Origin: Paragordius varius
Taxonomy: Eukaryota; Animalia; Nematomorpha
Length of the DNA stretch: 64,000 bases
Assembly: GCA_964247055.1 (NCBI GenBank)
Contig: OZ176055.1
Coordinates: forward strand, 7,192,001 to 7,256,000
Reading direction: 5' to 3'
Shown here: positions 2,417 to 55,408 of the stretch, piece after piece
Layout: each line of letters begins with the position of its first letter
How positions within the stretch are numbered: position 1 is the first letter of the stretch
Notes under the pieces: generated by a model
Database searches by the model: none
What the model was told of the DNA's origin: nothing
What the model saw: only the letters and a program-made list of their open reading frames with translations
Made by a program: the position numbers and the translations under genes

Positions 2417-4725
2417 ATGGCAAGCACAAGTATTTTTTTCTTGTCTTACATAAAATAGGTGATTTAGACCGTCAAATCGAAACCTTATTTAAATGTCAAC
2501 TAATAACTGAACAAGAAGTTAAAAGTTTATGCGCCAAAGCTAGGGAAATATTAGTTCAAGAAAGTAACGTTCAAAGGGTAGACGCTCCTGTTACTATATG
2601 TGGCGACGTTCATGGGCAATTTTATGATGTTGTCGATGAGTTACTTAAAAAAGCTGGTGGCCTAATGCCTGACACAAATTATTTGTTTTTGGGCGATTTT
2701 GTTGATCGGGGGTTTTATAGCGTGGAAACATTTTTGCTACTATTAGCACTCAAAGTTAGATATCCCGATAGAATTACTCTTATTAGAGGGAACCATGAGA
2801 GCAGACAAATAACTCAAGTTAAAATATTTTTTAATTGAACCTACCTAGGTTTATGGATTTTATGATGAATGCGTTCGTAAATACGGTGGTTCTACTGCCG
2901 TTTGGCGTTACTGTGTCGACACCTTTGATTATTTGTGTTTGGCAGCTTTAGTAGATGGCCGTGTCTTTTGTGTCCACGGTGGTCTGAGTCCTTCCCTCTG
3001 CTCACTTGATCAAGTGCGGGCTTTGGACCGGAAACGCGAAGTACCTCACGATGGGCCCATGTGCGATTTGCTTTGGTCCGATCCTGATGATAGCTCACCA
3101 TCTGGACTTCAAAAGTAATTTAAATAATTTCACAAAATAATATACCATTTGCACCAAGAGTGTCTTTAAACTCTTCAAGTTGATTGAACATTTCAAGTTG
3201 GTCTTTGAAATTTTTCAATTTTGCATTTATATTATTATTTTTTACCTAATTTTCTTTATTAAATATACAGTTATTTATTTAAAAATAAATTTTTTTATAT
3301 AAAAACTACTTTTTTGTTTCAAAATATTTTTTTTCTAATTTAACGATATTATTAACTTTTAAATTTTTTTTATGAAAAAGTTGTAAATAATAACCCAGAA
3401 AACTTATAAGTGTAAAAATCTCATAAATATTCAAAACAATATTTAAGAATATAACAATTCGGTTTGATTAATTAAAATTTGATATTGATTTAAAATTTAT
3501 GTTAATTATAGAGAATAGGTTAAAAAAGCCTAACTAGATGAATAATCGATTTGATTGACAAAAGTTAAAAACAAAACAAAATAGTTAAAGGACCAACTTG
3601 AAGTGTTCAAGGATCAACTCGATATGTTTAAGGACCAACTTGAAGTGTTCGCGGACATTATTGAAGTGCAAATGGTATACTTGTTTAATGCTCGGCAAAA
3701 TCTTTCCAAATATTACACTAATACTTTTTGTATAATATCTGTTTTTTGTTAAAATAATTATTTTATAGCAATTCAAGCGTAGTAAGTGGATGTTGGGGTG
3801 TTTCGCCTAGAGGGGCAGGCTACTTGTTTGGTCACAGAGTGGCCGCAGAATTTAATCAGACAAATGGGTTGGATTTGGTTTGTCGAGCTCATCAATTAGT
3901 TATGGAAGGTAATTTATAAATTTTTAAAAGGTAAAACTCTAATAAAAATCTAGTTAAATTTTATCCAATTTTAACATTTTATTTGTTATTTTCAATAATA
4001 ATTACATAAACCGTATTAAAATAGATTTATCGGTTAATTTTTTTAATGATTACAAAATTTTGATTTTATAAGCCATCGAACCGGATCTTTTTAATTAGTC
4101 ATACATTAATATTTAGGATTTAAATGGCATTTCCCACCCCCGGCGGATCCAAACTCCCAATCAAATTTACTGGCCGACGATAATCAAAATGCTAATATGG
4201 ATTTCACCAACGATGACAACAACCCAATGAATCATGGTTTTGTATTGTTATCTAATAATTGTTTATTTAATTTTGTTTTTATTTACATTGTAAGTTGATA
4301 AAATTTTAATAAAGAGTGGTCCTTTATTTAATATTCGTTCTATCAGTTTTATTGAACTTTCACCTTTCCATTTCGGCATTACATAAAAAGAACGTATTGC
4401 AATCTGATAATGGGATTTTGTAATTGCATTAGGTTTATCAAATAATTATGACAACGATGCAGACGATAACATGTACAATTTATCGTCTGCATCCCTATCA
4501 GCTGCTGGTAAAGAAAAATCACGTGGCCCCATAAATCAAGCAGCGATTGGTGGACTAGTGCTTACTGTTTGGTCGGCACCCAATTACTGTTATAGATGTG
4601 GAAACGTGGCGGCGATATTGGAACTCGATTCTAATCTTGGCATTAATTTTAAAATCTTTGAAGCGGCTCCGAGAGAAAATATCAAAAATTTGCCTAAAAT
4701 GCCTCAAGCTGAATATTTTCTTTAA
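2417..4725 (+). CDS. PPP4C: Serine/threonine protein phosphatase 4 catalytic subunit, 6 exons, about 396 aa
   Basis: Exons 2417-2429, 2459-2817, 2849-3114, 3769-3908, 4117-4236, 4433-4725 sum to 1191 nt in one open frame. Motifs [48 protein letters not shown] and C-terminal AEYFL match PP4 rather than PP2A or PP6. Confidence 0.95.
3138..3690. repeat. Diverged inverted repeat in PP4 intron 3, arms built from a 21-nt unit
   Basis: Reverse complement of 3138-3210 (aaagaccaacttgaaatgttc...gtgcaaatggtata) matches 3588-3679 (aaggaccaacttgaagtgttc x3 ...gtgcaaatggtata). Confidence 0.8.
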
Positions 4726-8232: not shown

Positions 8233-8788
8233 TTACTTGGATACAACACATTCATTCCAGTCCTTCGATTCAAATTGGAGTAGTTAGATACCTTTAAAAT
8301 TAAATAATTTAAAAAATATCGAATAAATTGAAACCATAGCAAAGGTTTGCAGTTATATAACATTATTCATTCGTAATATAATAAAAAATTGATTCAAAAA
8401 ACTTGATATTACTTTTTCAAAGGTAAAACCCCAAGGTAAAAATTTAGCCAACATGATATGAGTGCATAAGCTAAATATAAAAATAATGGAAAATACACCA
8501 CTTTTTCTGTTTATATCACTGAATGTTATTTAATAAATAGTATACTTAATTTTAGGCTTAGAATTAAAAAAACTCTATATCTTGCAAAAATGTTGTAAAA
8601 TAAAGATGGCATCCAAGTAGTTTGATGCGTAACTTTTTTTCCAAAACTAAATTTTATTTAGATATTTTGGCTTATTTATATAATTTTTATTGGGATAAAA
8701 GCATAAATTTAATTTGGAACCGTTTCTTTCAGTTTTTTTTAAAAATATCAACTAAATATTGTCTGGGGTATCAATTTGAATCAAAGTG
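8233..8788 (+). mobile_element. Non-autonomous piggyBac-type MITE family copy (about 570 bp), degraded ends
   Basis: Shares ttggatacaacac..ccttcgattcaaattgg..ccatggcaaa..atggcgtc/atggcatc..gtctggggta with copies at 13373, 14379, 32359 and 53489-55408. Confidence 0.75.
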
Positions 8789-12579: not shown

Positions 12580-13372
12580 TTATATTTAGCACTTTATAAG
12601 TATGTGTTTAAAAAGTGGAATAAAGTTTTAAATATATCCTCCAACTAAGTTTCTAAAAAGAGTTAAATAAAAAACTTGTAAATTATGGAATGACTTCAAC
12701 TCATATTTCTTAAAATCATCGTTTTAAAATAATGAAACGAATATACCTTAAAAGTTCAGATAATTATAATTTTGATTTGTCTAAATTGTAGTTTGGATAA
12801 ATAGTATCTATATTTTAAAAATTACACGTGCACATCCAAAAAATATCTTGACTATAATTTTATGAAAGAAAAATGTATCAAGAAAAATATGGTTTTGGTT
12901 TTCATGGGTACGAGTGATGTAAGCAAGTAATTTGCACAGTGATAATTGCTCGATATCGTAAAATCCCAAAATTAGCCCACATTATGCTAAAATTTTTTTT
13001 TGGTAAAAACAAAATGCTTTATTTCAAAATATTTAAATATATTATATACTATAAAAAAGGCGTAATTTATAGTATGGATGGCGCTCTCAAATTATGTGAG
13101 TGTGTGTTGGAGTGCCGGAGTTCGACCTCAGTGGGATATTTTTCTATCATTACTGTTAGCCATGGCGATAAAGGTTCCACAATTCCTGGTACATTTTAAA
13201 TACAATATATTAATAAAAAAAGAAAAAGAGGCTTTAAACAGTATATTTTTACTATATAACAGTAAAACAATATAATAATAAAATATTTTTAAATGTGAAC
13301 CACACAAGTCACAAATTTTCGCTCCTCTCGGGCTAGTTTTTTTAAAACATAAAAATCCCGAACAATATTTAA

Positions 13373-13935
13373 CAATTGGATACAACACATTCCTTTCAAT
13401 CCTTCGATTCAAGTTGGGGTAGTTAGATACCCCAGGCTTGTTCAAAATTGAATATTTCAGAAAAAATGATAATTAATTGAAACCATGGCAAAGGTTGACA
13501 CCTATATAACACTAATAAACTGAAATATAAAAAAATTATCTTTCAAAATTATTTGATATTACTTATTCAGAGGTAAGACCCAAAGCTGAAAATTTAGCCA
13601 TTATGACATATGTTTATGAACTGAAAATAAAAATCCAAATACCACTTTTTCTGTTTATACTATTTAAATGTGATTTTAATAAAAAAGTAATCATAGTTTT
13701 AGCCTTAGAATCAAATAAAAACGATATTGTGCAAAAATGTTGTAAAATAAAAATGGCGTCCAAGTAGTTTGATACGGAACTTTTTTTCCAAAACTAAATT
13801 TTATTTAGATATTTTGGTTTATATATAAAATATTTATAGGTTAGAAGCAAAAATTTAAATTGGAACCGTTTCTTTCAGTTTGTATATGAATTTTAATATT
13901 GTCTGGGGAATTTGATACCCCAGTTTGAATCGTAA
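13373..13935 (+). mobile_element. piggyBac-type MITE copy
   Basis: ttaa|caattggatacaacac start; aligns end to end with the family. Confidence 0.75.
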
Positions 13936-14378: not shown

Positions 14379-14953
14379 CACTTCGATTTAAATTGGGGTA
14401 TCTAAATACCCCACGCTAAATTTGAGATAGGATTTTTAAAAACTACTGAATGAAACGGTCCCAATGTAATCTTATGCTTACATTCTAATAAAAATTATAC
14501 AAATGTGCCAAAATATCCAAAGAATATTGTGTTTTGAACAAAAAATCCATGTCAAACTACTTCGACGCCATTTTTATTTTACAAAGTTTTTGCAAAATAT
14601 CTCTTCATTTAATTTTAAGGGTAAAATTAAAGCTAATTTTTATTTAAATTACTTAAAACATTGATAGAAATAGAAAAAGCAGTTTATTTTTATTATTTTT
14701 CAATTTTACCATTGCACACATGTCACGTTGACTAAATTTTTACCTTTGGGTTTTAGCTTAAAATAAATAATATCAAGTATTTTTGAATACAATTTTTTTA
14801 TATACATCGGTTTATTAATGTTATATAAGTGCAAAATTTTGCCATGGTTTTGATTCCTTATATATTTTTTAAGAACTTTTTTTAAACAGGCCTGGGTATT
14901 TAACTACCCCCGTTTAAATCGAAGGACTATAATGAATGTGGTGTATTGAAGTG
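14379..14953 (-). mobile_element. piggyBac-type MITE, intact termini, 575 bp
   Basis: TTAA|CACTTC...GAAGTG|TTAA: TTAA at 14375-14378 and 14954-14957; subterminal inverted repeats ttcgattYaaattggggta. TTAA duplication is diagnostic of piggyBac. Confidence 0.85.
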
Positions 14954-29100: not shown

Positions 29101-32100
29101 TACAAGCATTTATTTTTTAAAGACAACTATGCCTTTTTAACCGTTAAATTTTTTTTCAAATAACCTTAAAGATTATACAATAGTGCAATGTAGTGGGATG
29201 TATTATTATTGAGAGAATTAAACATTATATACAATGTAATATATTTAAAATTTAAGCTAGAATGAGTATAAAATAAAATTAGATTCTAATTTCGACTTTT
29301 ATTTCAACACAAGTGCAAAATTAATATCTAATTTTATTTTATATGCATTCTAGCTTAATTTTTAAATAAATTACAGAGTGGGAGGTGTGCATCATTTTCT
29401 CTAGCAGTTGCTCGCTTCCAAATTTTTGAGCAAAATAACTTGCGAGATAGTCGTCTTTGGTCAATTGAGTTATGTTTAGATCGTGGCTGATGGTTTTTTC
29501 CTAATCATGATATGGTCTGCCTCATCTAAAATTGCCATTTGGATGGAAGGATATTTAATCCAGCCATTTAAGCGGTCATTATGGCCCCAGTATCTGAGAT
29601 TTGTTCTGAGAAAAAAGAATTTAGTTGGGATTTGGAACACATATACATTTGTCCCTTGTTTGGGGTAAATATTTTGTGTGACATTATATACTTGAGTTGA
29701 TGGAATTTGGCCCAAGCTTGATGTGTTCGTGTTGTTATATCGTTTTTATTAATATTGGCTGCTATTATATCACCCAGGTAATTGAACTTATTTTCGATTT
29801 AAATGTTTATAGATGGAAGGTAAGTGAATCGCGTGGGACTGTCTGGGTTTTAATCAGGTGTTACACAAGCTTACACACAAAACTTTTAATGCTTAATAAA
29901 CTTCCTTTAATTTGTGAGCACTTTTTGTGGATCAACAGTTAGCATTTAGTGCATTCAATGGAATATAATTCCACTTTAGAGTGACAAATGGAGCAAGGGA
30001 ATTTCTTATAGGCAGTGGGCCTGTGATTAAGGCCTTTGTTTTATATGTGTTAATTTTGAAGCCAAATATTTGTAACTTAGATCAGAGATTAAATTTATAA
30101 ACGATGGCTATTTCGCAGGTGGCTGTTGGTATTATGTCGTCAGCGTACAACATTTAGTAAGGTAAACCAGTTTTTATATTTTCATTTATTATACCCATAA
30201 TAATGATATAATGGACTGAGGATAGAGCCATAGTGTATCCCGACAGTCACTGGGAATCGATTGGTATCTTCCACGGGAGTCACGCAACTAAAGGTGTTTT
30301 AATATTGTAAATTAATACTTTTATTATCCATTACGAATTTCCGTAACGCAAATGTGATGATGGACCGCGGGATGCAATCGAATGCATGGCTTAAATCAAT
30401 AAAGACCAGATATAAAGTTTCAGTTTTGCATCTGAAGTTCTATTGTAACCTTCTAAGAATAAATATGGCGTAAGAAATATTGACACCTTGTTGAAATCCG
30501 AAGTGGGTTTCGTCAATCAAGCAAAGCTGACGTATTTTCTTTTCTATTATGATTTCATAAGTTGTCTTTTCAAATAATTTTAATAGTCTGTATGAGGCTA
30601 AGTATGTCACCTTTGTTTCTATATTTGGAATCATATTTTAATTCCCATCTAAGTTTTTCATCCAGTATAATCAGCTTAAATAACTCTAGGGAAGGGAAAT
30701 TGCTTCAGGTATATTTTGTACATTTCAGTTTGCTTTATTAATTTTGTATTTTTGTATGACTAGAGGTAATGATTGGGGGTGGCCCAATAAATAAAGATAA
30801 GTTTGGTATCTCGATCTTTGAATGCTGAAAATTTAGTGTACTGTGCATGCATTGTGTCCATACATTTTGATACTAAGAGTGTCAGTAACTGTGTTATTAT
30901 TTTGACCTTTTATGGCTTTCACTACTAGGATATCTTTTTCATTCCTAATGATATTTTTCAGTGTTTTAAAAACTTGTAAGTTTTTAATTTCTCCTTCAAG
31001 TTTTTTGGCCTCCAAGCATCTTTCATTTTGTTAGCTATTATTTTCTTTACTCGTTTTTTCACCATACTAGCATGTTTTCCATTTTTTAAAAACTTCTCTT
31101 TTCTCATTTAATAAAGGTTTAATATCGTTTTGCCACCACCATTGGGATTTTGTTTTTCGCACGTTTTCTTCTGAAGATTTTGGAGTTTGTGACTAGAGTG
31201 TTTTTTAGATGCTCCCAGCCGTCATGCACCTTGTTAGGGGAAAGTTTTAGTTCAGATGTAATTTGGTTAATGTAATGATGGTTTATTATAGGATCACTAA
31301 ATTTAGGAACGTTAAGTTGAGGCAATTTTTTAGGGCTAGGTCGGTTCTTATATATTGTAGCAACTATTAGTTTATGTTGTGCATCATATTCATAGGTTTT
31401 AATGTTAATTATAAATTTCCTATGTTTTTTATTCATTAACATGAAATTAACTTGAGATATGTGTTTGCCACTTTTGTATATGTGCAATAGACTGGGTTTT
31501 TTTGTAAAGTGTGTGTTGCAAATCAATCGATCTACAGCACAATCCTAAAAGCGCTTCCTCTTTGTTGCGGGAAATTACTTCATAACCATCGGCGTCCATT
31601 GAAATCTCCGCCAAATAAAAGTGTGCCATTTGTGGGAACATTTTGTGCAATCTGATAAAGCTAAATCCAAAATTCAGGTTTGTTTGTTTCATTACTGTTG
31701 AGGAGTATAGATAAGTATATTGAGGGTTGTAATATTAATTGCCATTCGCATTTGGATAATTTTCTCGTTGTGATGTGTCAATTATATTTTCTTTTATCTG
31801 ATCGCTTATGGCTTCCCCTGATTTTCCCATTTTTCCTCTTTCAGAATAAAGTGTAAAACCTCCATATCGATAGTTACCTCCATTTTTCAAACGTGGTTCT
31901 TGTAAAGTTGCATTTATTACACTGAAACACAACTTTTTCTGAATCTAAAATTTTGAATATTTTCTGATTCCTTATGGTATTGGTATCAGATCTGTGAAAA
32001 AATTTAGTTATCCAAGTCGTTTTCGAGATATGAAACTTTTTCCAAATTTGGACATTTTCAATATTTTCTCGTTTGTGAATATTTTTAGGTAAATATGTGG

Positions 32101-35100
32101 CTTCTAAAAATATTTTTATAAAAGCCCAATAATTTTTCTTTAAAAAAACTTAAAATATCAAATACTTTATGTTTTAGCGGGCAAAAACCCTCAAAAATTG
32201 GTTAAGTTAACACTTTTTAATACAAATATTTTTTTTCATATTATAAAATAACAAATTTTATTTTTGTTTTTGGATGTTAATAATGTTTGTTTAAATAAAA
32301 ATATCATTGGTTTATTATTAAAAATAAATTTCATCTTTACACCTTTTTTGCTGCTTTTACTTCGATTAAAATTGGGATTTTAAAATACCCCAGATAATAT
32401 TTAAGTAAATTTTTTCCAAAAACTAGTGAAGGAAACGGTTCCAAGCTAAAATATTAAATGAAATTTTGTTCTGGAAAAAATTCCGTATCAAATTTCTAGA
32501 GGACATTTTTGCTAATATCATGTTTATTTGATTTTAAGCCTAAAATTAGGTTTGCTTTTTTATTAAAATCATATTTAAAATGGATATAAACAGAAAAAGT
32601 GGTATATTTTGCATTATTTTTATAATTAGCTTATCATATGTTACAAAATTTCCTTTGGATTTTCTTCTGAATAAGTATTATCAAGTATTTTTGAATGCCT
32701 TTTTATTTACTTCGGTTCATTAATGTTATATAAGCGCAAACTTTTGCTTGAAATATTTTATCTTAAACAAGCCTGAAGTATCTAAGTACCTCATTTAAAT
32801 GGAAGGATTGAAATAAATGTGTTGTATCCAAGCGTTAAAAGTAGCTAAAGTTTACTCAGATGGAATCAATAGACTCTTAATTTCATCTGATTCTTTTTGA
32901 ATATTTTTCATATATCTGTTCAACAATACTAAATTTTAGTAAAAATATAATTCAAACAAAGTAAGTGTTATCTTTATAATGGCCGACGGGTAAAATTATT
33001 GTATTCACACCAAAATCTAAGAGGATAAACTAATGAGACGGTAAGGGTGTTGTTTGTGGACCGTTGTGGTAGAAAGCACTCATATTCGAACTAGGTGAAG
33101 ATACAAAAAAACGCTTTTATATATTTTTTCTTTGTTTCATAGATTTTTAAACAATATATCGATTTGCAGAAAGTTTTCATTAAATGCCATTCATCAAGAA
33201 AAATTATATATGCTATCGTAATAATATAAACATTAAATGGACTGATAAAATCTCTAATACTGAATTAATAAAAGAAAATAAAACCAGCTATTACAATCCA
33301 CAACATGATCGATAAAAATCAAATGGGTTTCCTAGGCCATATTTTAAGCAGTGGACCTTTCAGTTTATCGACATTAGTGGGAATGGTTAATGGTAAAGGA
33401 ACTCTCGTGGTCGACCTTCAAAATGTTACCATGACCAAGTACCCATTTCGCAGCAATTTGGATTCAAAAACTGTTGACGTCAGCTAAGATTATCTTGAAA
33501 AAATCTCTTTGCACTATGGTCGTATACGACTGCGCAGAATAAATGATAGAGAATATGCCATATCTCTTATACAACATATAATACCATCAATAAATATTTC
33601 GATTCTTTAATTATTTTATTTGACTAAGCCTTTTGAACATTTTTTTACAAAAATAAGAATCAATTTATAGAATTATACGGATGATTAACAAATCCAAATT
33701 TAATAATGGTTCACCAAATTAGCGTGAATATTAATTAAAGTGTAGAGTTTGCTTAGGAGATTTAAAGACACGGATAATTTATCTTGATTTTGGAATAGAA
33801 CTATATTATATTAAGTGTAATAAATAGAGAACAAATAATTATTCATTTATATATAGATAATCAAAATTAAATTTTTATTATTTCGGTAATTTTTTCCCAG
33901 GGTTTTAATAAATGATGTCCCTTTTCGCCTCTTTGATAAGTAATGGCGTCTTTAGGAAACAGACATAGATGGGCATCCACATGCAGATAAAAAAAAGGTA
34001 TTATAAATGATAAGTAACATGTGTATAACAATATAAATACCCATCCTATAGAAAGAGTCAATTAAACAATTTTGGGAAAAGCATCGTAATGCCACCCATA
34101 CCGCTCTTTGGGTTGCATTTTGGATTTAAACGCCAAATCGTTGAAAAAACTCGTCACCTAAAAATAAATGTATAATACCTGCGGTCCTATCAAAACTGCG
34201 CCGTTAATTTTTGCCGACTTTATCATAAATTTTCTGAAATAATGAACCCAAGCTTCGACAATTTTATCAAGACTACACAAAATTATTTTTGCCAATCCAA
34301 GCAGCGTGTGGAATGCCGGCAAAACAAATTTGTTAGCCGATGTTAACGGGGTAAATATCTGATTCTTGGGCACAACTTCATAATTTCTTAAATGAAATCC
34401 CTATCGCAGTAGTTTGAAAAAGTTTATAAAAAACATCATAAGCTTCTTTATAAACACGGCTATAAACTATTATAATTGGCCTGTGTATCCGGCATGGTCT
34501 ATCGAAAAACGTTCCAAACTTTCCTATAAAATATCAAATATTGTATTCCCGGCTGAATGCGATTAATATTGGCCTGTGCTCTCCGGCACGGTCCAATAAA
34601 AATGCCTTCAAACTTTCCTAAAGATGTAAAATATTATATACCTGAGAAGCGTCTAGAAATAATACCCATTGTGATGAATCATATGGATAATTCATTTCCT
34701 TCATTAAGCCAATCACATCAGGATAAATAACTGTTTTCGGAAAAATATTTTCGGAAATTTATTCCTCTATTCCGAAAACTAGTTATGTTGATGTCAGTTA
34801 AATTTTTTCGATTAAAAGTCCTCACCATAAGTTCGGACGACCTAATATAATAATATATTTAAAAAATGTTTGGCTTATTCAAAAATAAATACAAAATTTA
34901 ACTTATATATTTAACGCATTTCAGCTTAAGTAAATTAAAATAAATTATAAAATGCGTAAATCTATTATTTTTTCTAAAAATACCGTTTTGAGACATGCAA
35001 TTTTTTGATTAGGGATATCACCTCAGTGCCACTTAATTTATTAGTATCCTTTATATCTTGATGATATTTCTAAATCATTATCATCCATAATCTTAACAAA

Positions 35101-36513
35101 TAAATCGATATGAATGGTTGGAGATGGAGGTACGGGAAGGTCAATGGAATGATAAACAGGACGAATTGTGCAAAGAAAGTTTGGATATTCGATAGGTTTT
35201 TTTGTGGTAATGTTAATTTGAGATGGTTTTTTGGCAATCCGCAAAGGTAACATTCGGAATGTGATTTTGGCTCACGCCATTTCATAGGGATACCCCAAGA
35301 AGGGAGTCTAGGTCCGGTTTTATGGTATAATTCCTTTGATCTTCCCGTACCTCCATCTCTAGTCATTCATTCCGATTTATTTGATATGATGGATGATAAT
35401 GATTTGGAATTTTATCATCAAGATATAAAGGATACTAATAAATTAAGTGGCACTGAGGTGATATCCCTAATCAAAAAGTTGCATCTCTCAAAACGGTATT
35501 TTTAGAAAAAATAATAGATTTACGCATTTTATAATTTATTTTAATTTACTTAAGCTGAAATGCGTTAAAAATGTAGGTTAAATTTTGTATTTTTCTTTGA
35601 ATAAGCTAAACATTTTTTTAATATATTATTATATTAGGTCGTCCGAACTTATGGTAAGGACTCTTAATCGAAAAAATTTAACTGACATCAACATAACTAG
35701 TTTTCGGAATAGAGGAATAAATTTCCGAAAATATTTTTCCGAAAACAGTTGTTTATCATGGTGTCATGATGTGATTGGCTTAATGAAGGAAATGAATTAT
35801 CCATATGATTCATCACAATGGGTATTATTTCTAGACGCTTCTCAGGTATAAAATATTTTACATCTTTAGGAAAGTTTGAAGGCATTTTTATTGGACCGTG
35901 CCGGAGAGCACAGGCCAATATTAATCGCATTCAGCCGAGTTTATAGGGAAACCTATAATATTTTTGAAAATATTTTGAAACTACTGCGATACAACTATCA
36001 TTATTGGCATGTAACAGGGGATTATAAAGTTTTTAAAAAATTTAATAATTTTTATAGGTCATGGGACTGCTTTTCGGTATACATAAAGGATTTCCCAAAT
36101 TTTTTTGCCCTTTGTGTGAGTGGGACTCGCGTGACACCGAGAAACACTATATAAAAAAATTTGCTATCAAAAAATTATGAGGTTGGGCCCAATAATCAGA
36201 TTTTCCTGTTAATATCGGCTAACAAATTTGTTTTGCCGCCATTGCATACGCTGCTTGGATTGACCAACACATTTTTTGTGTAGTCTTGATAAATATGTCA
36301 AAGTTTGGGTCTATAATTTCAGAAAATTTAGGATGACGCCCGCAAAAATTAACGCCGCAGTTTTGATAGGGCCACAGGTATTAATTAATTTAATTTTAGG
36401 TGACGAGTCTTTTCAACGATTTGTCTTTTGAATTACAGATCAAAGAGACGAAAAGGGACATCAATTATTTAAACCCTTTGAAAAAATTACCGAAATAATA
36501 AAAATTTAATTAG

Positions 36514-36549
<36 letters not shown>

Positions 36550-39500
36550 TGAATAATTATTTGTTCTCTATGTGTTACACTTATTTGCTTATATTCCAAA
36601 ATCAAGATAAATTATCCGTGTTCTTAGATAACCAAACTCTACGCTTTAATTAATATCTAATTTACTGAAGCATTATTAAATTTGGATTTGTCAATTAACC
36701 GTATAATTCTATGAATTGATTTTTCTTTTTGATAAAAAAGGTTTAATAGGCTTAGTCAAATAAAATAATTAAAGTATCGAAATTTTTAATGGTATTATAT
36801 ATTGTATAAAACTGTTTAATTTTTTTATAAGAGATATGGCTATTTTCCATATTCATTTATTCTGCGCAATTGTATGTGACCATAATACCGAGAGATTTTT
36901 CCAAGATAATTTATTAGCTGACGTCAACAGTGATTTTAGATCCAAATTGTGGTAGTATGTTGAAGTTTGAACATGAGCTCTTTTACCGTTAACCATTCCC
37001 ACTAATATCGATAAACTGAAAGGTCTACTGCTTAAAATATGGCCTAGAAAACCCATTTGATTTTTATCGATCATGTTGTGGATTGTAATAGCTGGTTATT
37101 TTCTTTTATCGATTGAATAACAGAGATTTTATAAGTCCGTTGGCGATTTGGTCAAAATCGTCTGCCTTTTGGATATGAGAAGAACACACCAAAACCATCA
37201 AATACATTTTATATTTATACTTTAGGGATATGGATGATTCTTTATTTGTAAGAGTGCAATCTAAAGAGACTTATTACCCTGATGAAGTTTTACGATACTC
37301 GGAAATGAATTCTTTTTTAACAAAAGTTGAGTCACCCGCAAAACTTCAGTTGTTTAGGGGAACAGTAATGCCATAGGAAAATCAAAGATAAGTACCTTTT
37401 TATATTAAATTATATTTTATATTAATCTTTTAACCATATATTCTTATAAATATTTGGGTTATCGTCTGCTCGGTTAAATTATTATTGCTTTTTGTCGTTA
37501 ACGTTTCATTAAATTAAAACTACTGTCGCTTATCAACAACTCAATTATTATCAAACCTCTGTTCCAAAAATCCAACTATAATGTCCTTTCCAAAGCGCAG
37601 GTTATGTACGGTATTTTTTTTAATTCTTTTTTTAAGCAAATTACACTAACTTACGGTAAAAAATTAAATCAAAATGATATTTTATATACATACATATATA
37701 TACAAACATTTGCAATCATAAAAATTTTATTAGAAAAAGTTATAAAAGTTTTTTCCCAATACTTATATAGTTCACGGTACTCTGACAATTGGTTCACCAA
37801 TTGTACGAATGGATGTACCCCGTGCTTCATTGTCATAAGTCCATTTTGATGTTTAGAATATTAGGATAGCATATATAATTTTTCTTGATGGTCCATGACA
37901 TTCATATAAAACTTTTAGCTGCAAATCGATATATTGTTGATTTTATAAAAATCTATGAAACAAAGAAAAAAATATATAAAAGCGTTTTTTGTATCTTCAC
38001 CTAGTTCGAATATAAGTGCTTCCCACCAAAACGGTCCACAAACGACACCCTTACCGTCTTTATAGTTTATCCTCTGGGATTATTTAGTGTAAGATTCAAT
38101 ATTTTTACCAGTCGGACATAAGTTTATAAAGATAGCATTTACTTTAAGATTATATTAATTATATTTTTAGGCATAAAATTTAGTATTGATGAACAGATAT
38201 ATGGAAAATATTCAAAAAGAATCAGATGAAATAAAGAGTCTATTAATTCCAGCTGAGTAAATTTTAGCTTTTTTTAAATAAAAAAACAGCAAAAAGGTGT
38301 AAAAATGAAATTTGAATTTTAAAATAAAAGTCAAACAAAAGCTATACACAATGATATCTATATTTAAAGATACATTAGTAATATGCAAAAACATAAAATA
38401 AAATTTGTTTTAATAAAATATGATGATGAAAAATATTTGGGTCAAAAAATAATAATTTACCCTATTTTTGAGGGTTTTCGCTAGCTGGAACAAAAAGTAT
38501 TGGATATTTTAAGTTAATGAAGAAAAATTATTGGGCTTTTATAAAAGTATTATTAAGCCACATATTATTTGTTTAGAAACGAGAAAATATTGAAAATGTT
38601 TAAATAAAAAAACCATATCTCGAAAACGTTCTCGACATTCAATTTTTTTATAACAGATCCGATCTCAATACCATAAGAAATCAGAAAATAATAAAAATAT
38701 ATGATCCAGAACATTGACCCCAACTTTTATTCGTAAGTGTTATCATTCAAGCTTTCATATAAAATTATTATCCTTATTATTAAAGGATTTTTCTCCAGTA
38801 ACAACATTACTCTTTTTCGTAGATGTATTATTTTATAAATATAATTATTATTAATATTATGCAATATAAAATAAATAAATAAAATGAAATTTCAAAAGAC
38901 GTTTTTTAACAAATATTTATTCATTTATTATTTCGCTGTTAAGCATGGTAAGGTAATGAGGCTTGATTTTTATGGGCTATATGTCCTTATAACCAACCTC
39001 TTAACTCGGAGGAAGAGTACCTTATTCGCTGTACCAGGCTAGAGAGTGTCTAAAAAGATTCAAATCTCTCACGTTTGTAGATTTAAGTCTACGGCCGAAG
39101 GAGGTGCTTTTCCGGGCTTTGGAAGCTCTTACTCCATCTTTCGTTTTGACAACTTAAATAATCGTAATTATCATCTGGCTGTTGGTTATAGCGCCCAAGT
39201 AAACTCGCTTTAAAACCATATGTGTAAATACAGGTATTATAATAATTTTTGTGAGGAAAGAAGATAGCCAATCTCATTTCCGCCATGGCCCACACATTAG
39301 TTTTCTTTCATGTGAATTGATGTTTACATTGTATGTTCTTTTCAACAATGCCGCTCCCGTTAGCGTTACCCAGGATGCCCCGCGAGGAGGTAAAAGTCGG
39401 TCTTTGCATTGAGGTATGTTATCGATTTATATATATATATCCGTTATTTGGTAACCCAACACGATTTTGAAAGATCAAGTTTAAAAAAAATATGGTTGTC

Positions 39501-52398: not shown

Positions 52399-53488
52399 TT
52401 TTGAAGGCACACGTGTGAATTATTTTACCAATTGAAAATAAACATGCGGTATTACGAATCTAGGATTACGAAAAACAACATCCTATTGTTTTTAGTATAT
52501 ATATAAAGTCAATCTTCCGTTAAAGAATTCAGTAGACACTATATTTTTTTTATAAAGTTCGAATACATTCCCTTATTTAATATTACACCCAAAAGTAGAA
52601 CATTACAAAACTTTTTTCCGTTTTGTATACACTGCGCTCAAAAAGGGGATGTTAAAAACATCCTAATAAAATCTGATAAAAAATGTATCAGGATTATCAG
52701 GACTCTGGTTTCGTTTCTTACAAATGATATATTATTAACACTTTTGTGGTAAATTATCCATTATAAAAAATGGCAAAATTTGAGCATATTTTGTTAAATA
52801 AAATTTTTTGGCAGGCAAATTCTTACAAAAATGTCACTATATATACAAATTCAAAAAATATAATTGAATATTTAAGATGTAGGCTGCGAAAATCCAAATT
52901 TGCGCCACTCTAAACTGCAGGGTTCTCTCAAACTTCATGACTTTTAAGGTAATTTGACGCCCCGTACTATTTAAAATTTAAATAAAAGGTATTTTTAGCA
53001 TTAGTTAAAACATATTCTTTCTTTAGCTTTGACACATGAAAAAAAAATTTTAAAAAAACCAAATCACTCATTTTTGTAAAATAGTTTGGAAAGTTATTTA
53101 AGTTAAAATTTAATTATCAATTATTGTTCTCATGTTCAAACAAGCTGGTTTTTTATATCATTTCTAGAGTCTAAAATTGGGACATCACCAAAACAAATTC
53201 GAAATTAGTTCACATATCAAATTTTTTCTGATAAAATGTCTGAAAGCCTTGTTAATTATTTACATTTTTTAACCATAATAGACACTTAGTGTTGCATTGA
53301 TTTAAAAAATGTAAAAAAAATGGCGTCGAAAAATTTCAGGTGAAGATTTTTACATTTTTTAAAAAAAATATATAATGCGCTTAATAGATTAAAGGTAGCA
53401 TATTAAATTCGGCTTAAACCTTGAATATTAAAAAAAATATATTAAATCGATGTATATAAAACTACCCCAAAAGGCAACGGCCTGTTAA

Positions 53489-55408
53489 CACTTGGATACA
53501 ACACTTTTTTAATCCTTCGATTCAAATTGGGGTAGTTTGATACCAGTTTAAAATCAAATAATTTAAAAAGTATGGACGGAATCGAAACCATGGCAAAATT
53601 TTGCACTTATATAACATTAGTAAACCGAAATATATAAAAAAAATTTCAAAAATACTTGATATTACTTATTTTAACACTTGGATACAACACATTCATTTTA
53701 GTCCTTCGATTCAAATTGGGGTAGTTAAATACCCCAGGCCGGTTTAAAATTAAATTTTTTAAAAAATATGTAAGGAATAGATACCATGGCAAAATTTTGC
53801 ACCTATATAACATTAATAAACCGAAATATATAAAAAAATTTCGAAAATACTTAATATTGTTTATTTTAACACTTCGATTCAAATTGGGGTATCTAAATAC
53901 CCCAGACTAAATTAAAATTAATATTTTTAAAAAACTACTGCAGGAAACGGTCCCAATTTAAATTTATGCTTCTATCCTGATAAATATTGTATAAATATGC
54001 CAAAATATCTTGATAAAATTTTGTTTTGAAAAAAAAACTCCATCTCAAACTACTTCGACGCCATTTTTTTTTTACAAAATTTTTGCAAGATATCGTCTTT
54101 ATTTAATTTTAAGGGTAAAACTAAAGCTAATTTTTTATATAAATTACATCTAACATTGAAAGAAATAGAAAAAGCGGTTTAGTTTGTATAATTTTTCAAT
54201 TTTAAAATTTGACATATGTCACGTTGACGAAATTTTTACCTTTCGGTTTTAGCTTAAAATAAGTTATTTCAAGTATTTATGAATAATATTTTTTATAATT
54301 TCGGTTTTTTAATGTTAGATAAGTGCAAAATTTTGCCATGGTTTCGATTCCTTCTATATTTTTTGAAGAATTTAATTTTAAACAGGCCTGGGGTATTAAT
54401 GATTATATTTTTTCGATGTTTAAATTTGAATGGGTCTACCGGTTTTCATGTACCAGATCACATAGCCAGCATTTTCCATTTTTATAAATATATAGATCAG
54501 TAATACTCAAACCGTGGCCCGCGGGCCGCATGCGGCCCTAAGAGCGCTTTAAAATTGCCCTATGACCATATTGATAATTTTTAAAATACACATAAAAACA
54601 TTTGAATCGAAGGACTAAAATGAGTGTGTTGTATCCAAGTGTTAAGCTAAAACCGAAAGGTAAAATTTAGTCGCGTAACATATGTTCAATATTAAATTGA
54701 AAAATAATACAAAATACACCCCTTTTTCTATTTCTATCAATGTTAGATGAATTTTAATATAACATTAGCTTCAATTTTACCCTTAAAATTAAATGAAAAC
54801 GATATTTCGCAAAAAATTTGTAAAATAAAAATGGCGTCGATGTAGTTTGACATGGAACTTTTTTTCAAAACAAAATTCTATTTACATATTTTGGCACATT
54901 TATATATTTTTTTTAGGATAGAAGCAAAATTTAAATTGGGACCAATTCCTTCAGTAGTTTTTTAAAAATCCTTATTAAGATTAAGTCTGGGGTATTTAGA
55001 TACCCCAATTTGAATCGAAGTGTTAAGCTGAAACCAAGAGGTAAAAATTTGTTCAATGTAACATGTATTCAATGGTAAAATTGAAAAATAATACATAATA
55101 TACCGCTTTTTCTATTTCTATCGCTGTTAGATGTAAATTATATAAAAAATTAGCTTTAGTTTACCCTTAAAATTAAATGAAGACGATATTTCGCAAAAAT
55201 TTTGTAAAATAAAAATGGCGTCGAAGTAGTTCGACATGGAACTTTTTTTTCAAAACAAAATTTTATCAAGATATTTTGGCATATTTATATAATTTTTATT
55301 AGGATAGAAGCAAAATTTAAATTGGGACCGTTTCCTTCAGTAGTTTTCTAAAAATATTAATTTTAATTTAGTCTGGGGTATTTAGATACCCCAATTTAAA
55401 TCGAAGTG
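53489..55408. mobile_element. Three piggyBac-type MITEs nested at the same internal TTAA
   Basis: A 53489-53670 + 55027-55408; B 53675-53865 + 54646-55022; C (inverted) 53870-54641. TTAA at 53485, 53671, 53866, 54642, 55023 and 55409. Confidence 0.9.
54395..54599 (+). repeat. 205-bp direct repeat identical to 56056-56260
   Basis: No difference seen by eye over 205 nt; offset 1661. Confidence 0.9.

Follow-up and report, generated by a model that had tools for sequence, protein, structure and literature searches.

A 6.8-kb palindrome in the Paragordius varius genome is a dead Chapaev3 transposon whose inverted repeats were probably extended by a copy of its own 3′ part

How does a cut-and-paste transposon come to consist of two copies of its own 3′ half facing each other? 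The question is raised by a 6.8-kb palindrome at positions 31920-38739 of a 64,000-nucleotide stretch of the nematomorph Paragordius varius (contig OZ176055.1, positions 7,192,001-7,256,000; C6:7192001-7256000 in our numbering), which we call the window and which is AT-rich, with a GC content of about 28%. An initial annotation, made from the sequence alone, had attributed the palindrome to fold-back replication of a Chapaev3-like element, which would have yielded an element with two right ends that may have moved as a unit. We compared the left arm with the right arm by blastn and searched the 110.5-Mb assembly (44 contigs) for relatives; 20 fuller copies of the transposon (L-numbered loci) were extracted and compared, as were 47 aligned family termini, with both ends available for 16 copies. 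The element is a dead, old and rearranged Chapaev3 copy. It probably arose when a single element of an older subfamily (B), inserted once, had its 5′ internal part swapped for an inverted copy of its 3′ part, lengthening the arms from ~0.95 to ~3.2 kb.

The blastn comparison reproduced the fold-back arrangement of two facing 3′ halves, with the arms and coordinates assigned to it earlier. The arms, 31937-35154 and 38711-35326, align in inverted orientation in seven collinear blocks, from 31937-32309/38711-38349 through 34550-35154/35937-35326, with E values from 1e-8 down to 0, and the palindrome is real and far above chance. Divergence between the arms ranges from 1 to 22% depending on the segment: identity is 78% at the tips, 79-85% over most of the arm, 96-99% at 34550-35066 and 79% in the innermost 78 bp. 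Each arm carries deletions of its own. A 480-bp insert in the left arm, a 696-bp insert in the right arm and a (TA)16 array had likewise been described as arm-specific and later than the duplication, and the arm comparison bore this out. Apart from (TA)16, the only tandem repeats in 31500-39200 are two micro-arrays of about two copies.

The sequence belongs to a transposon that is present in many copies in the genome. Its canonical A form is 3.7-4.3 kb long with terminal inverted repeats (TIRs) of ~550 bp, and an older B form has TIRs of ~0.95 kb, which in L033 and L035 reach the equivalent of window positions 33124-33190. Chapaev3 transposons are recognized by CAC...GTG ends, duplication of a TWA target lying between A and T, and the motifs C(2)C, LH and H(4)H (PMC4079192); they carry a Chapa domain and are members of the Transib/RAG1 group (PMC4411706). 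All 47 aligned family ends start with CACTGTG, and the window copy begins with CACTG and finishes with AAGTG. All family copies have TTA or TAA next to their ends, as the paired ends of L025, L027, L028, L029, L037, L040, L043 and L044 show. In the window, a TTA at 31917-31919 preceded by A and a TTA at 38740-38742 followed by T give exactly the context of a TWA target site duplication (TSD) between A and T, so these boundaries read as the initial annotation had described them.

The coding potential led to the same family. An exhaustive HMMER search with the best-preserved 152-amino-acid piece found 596 relatives, and the 36 long relatives that we aligned share an N-terminal zinc-finger block (FCYxCG...C..C...PMIW..P..H..DCYFC) and invariant D295, D349, C368-x2-C371 and L416-H417. 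H-x4-H appears in L025, whose C-terminal piece contains KLHMVDSHL. The C(2)C, LH and H(4)H motifs are thus present in family relatives, where they were read rather than in the decayed arms of the window. A structural model of a 608-amino-acid relative, P0016 (predicted local distance difference test, pLDDT, 81.8), has a RAG1/Transib-like core fold and matches RAG1 (E 7e-8), HzTransib (template modelling score, TM, 0.53) and BbRAGL; D295 and D349 are invariant, and the catalytic glutamate was not pinpointed. Look-alikes of the transposase retrieved with ESM bear RAG1 domains, and a profile search reached a RAG1 N-terminal chain only at E=0.16. Pfam returned no family for eight open reading frame (ORF) pieces or for ten full-length relatives, and a PDB search by single sequence gave no match. 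On the basis of the ends, the TWA duplication, the motifs and the RAG1/Transib-like fold of the relative, the element is a member of Chapaev3, as had been proposed. It resembles other Chapaev3 elements in its CACTGTG termini, which are like the heptamer of the recombination signal sequence, in the TWA target between A and T, in the three motifs and in a putative Chapa-type zinc finger. It differs from them in having long TIRs (0.55-0.95 kb in this family, 1.2-1.4 kb in one derivative family and 3.2 kb in the window) and in the state of the window copy, a relic that is rearranged and non-coding. This copy lacks the transposase start, contains many stop codons and is single-copy; no host function is implied.

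Base-by-base alignment to eight canonical copies placed the fold-back junction, GGTAT/AATTCC, at 35326-35327, close to the position of about 35335 proposed earlier. The left copy can be aligned with all canonical copies up to 35327, where the homology breaks off; the right arm sets in at 35326, at a canonical position lying 173 bp back. The join leaves a unique spacer of 173 bp, with microhomology of at most 3 nt and no filler. The spacer (35155-35325, minus strand) is the second half of the putative Chapa-type zinc finger of the left copy, and the right arm begins at the DLPVPPS codons, in agreement with the asymmetric centre of the initial annotation. The left copy retains zinc-finger residues 74-94 (numbering of the relative P0013) at 35297-35241 on the minus strand and is without approximately the first 65 codons, the 5′ untranslated region (UTR) and the inner 5′ TIR. 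The spacer is old: in its tree it falls beside the old B-type copy L034, on a branch of 0.10 separate from the young A cluster, and no relative more than 84% identical to it was found anywhere in the genome. The adjoining innermost stretches of the arms, 35063-35154 on the left (minus strand; 79% identical to its partner) and 35328-35380 on the right (plus strand), are also old, with dense private changes. Opening of a hairpin in the manner of P nucleotides was considered as the source of the junction and rejected, since its geometry puts the mirror point at the break and not 173 bp back. The junction occurs nowhere else in the genome, all 36 of 36 candidate sites being split at 35326/7. With no further copies of the 3.2-kb-arm form, nothing indicates that the window copy moved after its rearrangement, and the suggestion that it moved as a unit has no support; the matching TTA on its two sides would be expected half the time by chance.

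The mirror symmetry, which had been thought to extend to matching ends, holds out to 31937/38711, and the outermost 40-50 bp are not mirror images, the right side containing an 11-bp insertion. Two terminus types exist in the family, a short type (CACTGTGACACAA-CTTTTTCTGG) and a long type (CACTGTGCAACAAAATATGGGGTCAATTTTCTGG) with the 11-bp insertion, and 15 of the 16 complete copies have one end of each. The window copy follows this rule in both the indel and the diagnostic bases. Its left TIR (31920-33124, plus strand; B subfamily, as judged from the 47 aligned ends and the TIR extents of L033 and L035) is split by the 480-bp repeat and has a short-type terminus (CACTGAAACACAA-CTTTTTCTG), and its right TIR (37839-38739, minus strand) has a long-type terminus (reverse complement CACTTACGAATAAAAGTTGGGGTCAATGTTCTGG). 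Because these termini are heterotypic, like those of 15 of the 16 copies, mirror copying stopped short of the element tips, and the element does not have two right ends. The type of end adjoining the 3′ half varies within the family: it is short in 10 A-type copies, flipped in 3 and mixed among B-type copies. This variation indicates that exchange between the long TIRs is frequent in the family. The interior is flipped relative to the end types in L042, L044 and L026, unlike in L025, L027, L031, L037, L039, L040, L041 and L043, a pattern that inversion of the segment bounded by the 550-bp TIRs, or an exchange of the tips, would produce.

The two flanks of the element are stretches of one decayed copy of a non-long terminal repeat (non-LTR) retrotransposon and follow each other collinearly in it; its endonuclease region occupies 31119-31916 on the minus strand and resumes at 38743-39100. 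Paralogues of this host repeat have intact ORFs of 1011-1051 amino acids (for example, at C4:6937686, C5:4141987, C9:4930043 and C6:9702245), and the family may be active. The flank blocks are spaced 85 bp apart in the paralogues and 30 bp apart in the window, and the distance between the two termini in host coordinates is at most ~20 bp. This proximity favours, without proving, what would be one insertion into an indel-ridden host copy. The initial annotation had named independent insertions with different TSDs as an outcome that would overturn its reading; what we found was an identical TTA at each end, preceded by A on the left and followed by T on the right. This match carries a likelihood ratio of only 2:1, because the target is always TWA (PMC4079192).

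The arms have a layered history. In a sliding comparison, both are mosaics of the two subfamilies. The old B-type internal sequence of the left arm (33125-34546, minus strand) comprises the C-terminal part of the transposase and the 3′ region and constitutes the inverted duplicate that extends the TIR; it is 84-92% identical to the right arm and 81-90% identical to an unlinked copy on C1 at 11.94 Mb, itself a mosaic, and B-type copies are also the best match of its inner portion, 34376-34546. Its counterpart in the right arm is 36036-37142 (plus strand), which includes (TA)16 at 36516-36547. Over 33196-34375 the arms are B-type, 84-92% identical to each other and similarly distant from the C1 copy. 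In the outer-arm tree, the two arms and the C1 copy form a clade (100/98) within which pairing of the arms has only 74/87 support, at distances of 0.13 between the arms and 0.16-0.17 to the C1 copy.

Nearer the centre, each arm contains a young A-subfamily patch, at 34550-35062 on the left (minus strand; branch 0.010) and at ~35381-36035 on the right (plus strand; branch 0.012). Both lie inside the young A cluster and are not sisters. The right patch pairs with L025 (81/75), to which it is 97-99% identical, and has alleles of the L025/L040 group, whereas the left patch groups with L038, L039, L042, L037 and L027 and shares their alleles. Among the ~14 differences between the arms within the patch, 4 are at sites that separate A subclades and ~5 are private to each arm. 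Since four of the differences fall at A-subclade sites and the patches are not sisters, each arm was overwritten separately over 0.5-0.65 kb from a different young A donor. Homogenization of one arm by the other was considered as the origin of the 96-99% tract and rejected, since the arms bear alleles of different A subclades. The outer edge of the right patch is in register, as at a homologous boundary, and at that of the left patch, which is non-homologous, 34454-34546 and 34550-34640 form a direct duplication of ~93 bp. A simple history of one duplication followed by decay, as first envisaged, does not account for this heterogeneous identity and the later patching of each arm.

The initial annotation had also used a fragment in both arms, ascribed to an RTE retrotransposon, as a marker that predates the duplication. 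This segment, at about 33055-33980, is also present in the unlinked copies L036, L035 and L047, and so is a trait of the B subfamily rather than an event specific to the locus. Its 60-amino-acid ORF matched only B-type Chapaev3 copies and never a long ORF, and its RTE origin was not confirmed.

How could such a structure have formed? In the course of events that we propose, a B-subfamily Chapaev3 element would have inserted once, at the TTA of an A-TTA-T site, into the endonuclease region of the non-LTR retrotransposon. An inverted copy of the element's 3′ part would then have taken the place of its 5′ UTR and about the first 110 codons, the likeliest route being a switch, during copying or repair synthesis, from one long TIR to the other, the two being homologous in inverted orientation. 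Having run inward on the wrong side to the equivalent of 35327, synthesis would have returned to the right-hand copy at the position corresponding to 35154, through microhomology of 3 nt or less; the tips would have been left unaltered, short on the left and long on the right, and the 173-bp unique spacer would have remained. Afterwards, the arms would have gained insertions and deletions independently, and different young A copies would have served as donors for the ectopic gene conversion or break repair that separately overwrote ~0.5-0.65 kb of each. We infer the template switch, and a rearrangement inside one element and not between two, from an inverted duplication that starts in the TIRs, tips that are unchanged, a short spacer and a join with microhomology. 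Several observations weigh against this proposal, beginning with the fact that its mechanism is deduced solely from the end product. Because the distance between the arms is scarcely smaller than that to an unlinked copy, divergence alone cannot separate duplication in situ from two copies of the same burst. The variable end type beside the 3′ half weakens, without removing, the argument from heterotypic ends. The comparison with a paralogous empty site is not clean either: relative to the C1 paralogue of the host repeat, the window is 20 bp short at the left terminus and a further 31 bp short within the right flank, a division that follows from the exact match of the 16 bases abutting the right terminus, and the predicted 27-nt empty site was not found in the genome at up to 3 mismatches.

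An alternative is that two separate B elements landed head-to-head at sites no more than ~20 bp apart, perhaps through local hopping, after which a deletion of ~1.5 kb, with 3 nt of microhomology at its join, took out their 5′ ends along with the intervening host DNA. Such a history would explain why ~20 bp of host sequence seem to be absent at the left terminus compared with the paralogue, why the arms are no closer mutually than to an unlinked copy, and why the right arm pairs with the C1 copy, not with the left arm, in the TIR tree (99/90). Nonetheless, we give it only a small share of the probability. Two insertions within ~20 bp are improbable a priori, the 3′ ends of sister elements should share a type yet are heterotypic here, and the TSD with its A/T context fits a single event; moreover, the 31-bp deficit lies inside the right flank, beyond the reach of this explanation, in a host copy that is riddled with indels. 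Slightly less credible still is the earlier view that fold-back replication produced an element with two identical right ends, which perhaps moved as a unit and whose arms simply decayed. The 3′ halves do face each other between identical TTAs, and a related family with extended arms has transposed, as described below. Against this stand the different terminus types (11-bp indel and diagnostic bases), the junction that is unique in the genome, and an identity that runs from 76 to 99% along the arms as a mosaic of subfamilies, which neutral decay after a single duplication could not produce; the TTA match, as noted, adds just a factor of two for a target that is always TWA.

Might the junction itself be young? 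The centre of an older palindrome could have broken and been repaired off an A-subfamily copy, creating 35326/7 in the process. Both arms near the centre are 96-99% identical to young A-type copies, and one patch edge is non-homologous, with its 93-bp duplication. The spacer, however, branches outside the A cluster (length 0.10), and no genomic match to it exceeds 84% identity; the innermost ~50-90 bp of the arms are old and 79% identical, and the patches came from different donors. The spacer tree and the absence of close spacer relatives overturned this scenario, which we regard as very improbable. A chimeric fold-back read deserves mention because palindromes are a known long-read artefact, but an artefact would produce identical arms, and arms that are 1-22% apart, with distinct 480- and 696-bp insertions, deletions and (TA)16, reduce its probability to almost nothing. 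The initial annotation had reached the same judgement from arm divergence.

Is the window copy alone in having extended arms? With ~3.2 kb, its arms far exceed the 0.55 kb of A-type and the ~0.95 kb of B-type copies, and copies with arms of intermediate length exist. L028 (2213-5699; C1:3931211-3934699) has arms of 1178 bp at 95.1% identity, and L029 (2574-6416; C3:4505573-4509415) has arms of 1388 bp at 94.1% identity. Both are non-autonomous elements of 3.5-3.8 kb with TAA duplications and heterotypic ends, and their arms include a fragment of the transposase C-terminus. Paired C-terminal matches recur at a constant spacing of 1555-1657 bp at a minimum of 10 loci, so this form with 1.2-1.4-kb arms has transposed. 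The proposed route to foldback-like elements with kilobase-long TIRs thus finds support in this related family and not in the window copy, which gave no sign of moving. In L030 (2424-5904), the inner 640 bp of one arm are absent, and it may be a pre-extension form. A second head-to-head join of two 3′ halves, with other breakpoints, is present in L036 (6387-9256; C1:11944386-11947255): the equivalent of 34825 is joined to the reverse complement of 34579 with a spacer of 246 bp. The locus retains a single TIR and includes a tract nearly identical to the A-type copy L040.

Fold-back inverted duplications in humans and yeast have a unique spacer of a few hundred base pairs and 0-3 nt of microhomology and arise by template switching in replication or repair. 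The window copy shares with them the inverted duplication, the short spacer and the microhomology, and one of the switches may likewise have passed through pre-existing inverted repeats; it differs in that the event took place inside a 4-kb transposon, whose own TIRs were the inverted repeats. Foldback (FB) elements of Drosophila also have inverted arms of kilobase length, but these arms consist of tandem subrepeats, which are absent from the gene-derived arms of the window. Comparable too are the extended or recombinant TIR (2RT) copies of Galileo, a P-superfamily element of Drosophila mojavensis: TIR extension by recruitment of internal sequence has already been described for Galileo, whose TIRs of at least 600 bp were lengthened by inverted internal sequence and which also has copies that are chimeras of subfamilies, repair or recombination between close inverted repeats being held responsible (PMC3573991). 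Besides belonging to another superfamily, the window copy differs from Galileo in having recruited 2 kb of transposase gene, in a junction and spacer defined at base level, and in later conversion patches that can be dated relative to that junction. Together with the transposed family with 1.2-1.4-kb arms, it carries TIR extension over to the RAG1-related Chapaev3 group. Taken alone, the window copy is a dead, rearranged element without sign of movement; its interest is as a clear case of a known process in a new superfamily. It is an unusually legible example of how an ordinary cut-and-paste element can give rise to foldback-like, long-TIR derivatives, and of how palindromes are later patched from relatives.

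More speculatively, the Chapaev3 elements of this genome might lengthen their TIRs systematically by TIR-anchored template switching, remaining mobile up to arms of at least 1.4 kb, and their palindromes might be hotspots of ectopic repair; we put this forward tentatively and would sooner bet against it than for it. If it were true, the window copy would be the immobile 3.2-kb extreme of a series of 0.55, 0.95, 1.2-1.4 and 3.2 kb, and about a dozen head-to-head pairs of distant relatives would stem from the same process.

Such pairs, in which transposase matches on the minus strand are followed by matches on the plus strand, were observed among distant relatives at C5:8127068-8130249, C4:9139071-9140937, C2:8715683-8716949, C3:7594532-7595511, C3:8599141-8601021, C3:8019399-8021797, C1:10079173-10080040, C2:7416842-7417836, C2:10470736-10472081, C4:2228435-2229048 and C1:6900556-6902250. 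The first of these is symmetric, with C-terminal and middle parts followed by middle and C-terminal parts. When a mid-protein query was used, 6 of 6 opposite-strand pairs were head-to-head and none was tail-to-tail.

The two arm-specific inserts are repeats in their own right. The left insert (32359-32840), with TTAA at 32366-69 and 32835-38, is a multi-copy repeat of ~480 bp that also occurs in the window at 8236-8593, 13368-13815, 14587-14842 and 53482-55407. It had been labelled a piggyBac element; no TIR was found at the boundaries that we tried, and this identity was not verified. The right insert (37143-37838), flanked by a direct repeat of ~11 bp, ATAAGTCC(G/A)TT, is one of the full-length copies of an independent ~700-bp repeat; this repeat is abundant, with 120 candidates in the genome, and its full-length copies are 84-93% identical. 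A-type Chapaev3 copies contain a fixed 410-bp fragment of the same repeat.

Among the relatives of the transposase, the A-type gene in L025 (3774-5473) is collinear with residues 6-540 of a 579-amino-acid relative, with changes of frame near 4288 and 4020 that could be frameshifts or tiny introns. More distant relatives with 41-43% identity have uninterrupted frames of 233-272 amino acids at C1:9938230, C1:8165532, C5:737395 and C11:370817, and these may be intact or domesticated copies.

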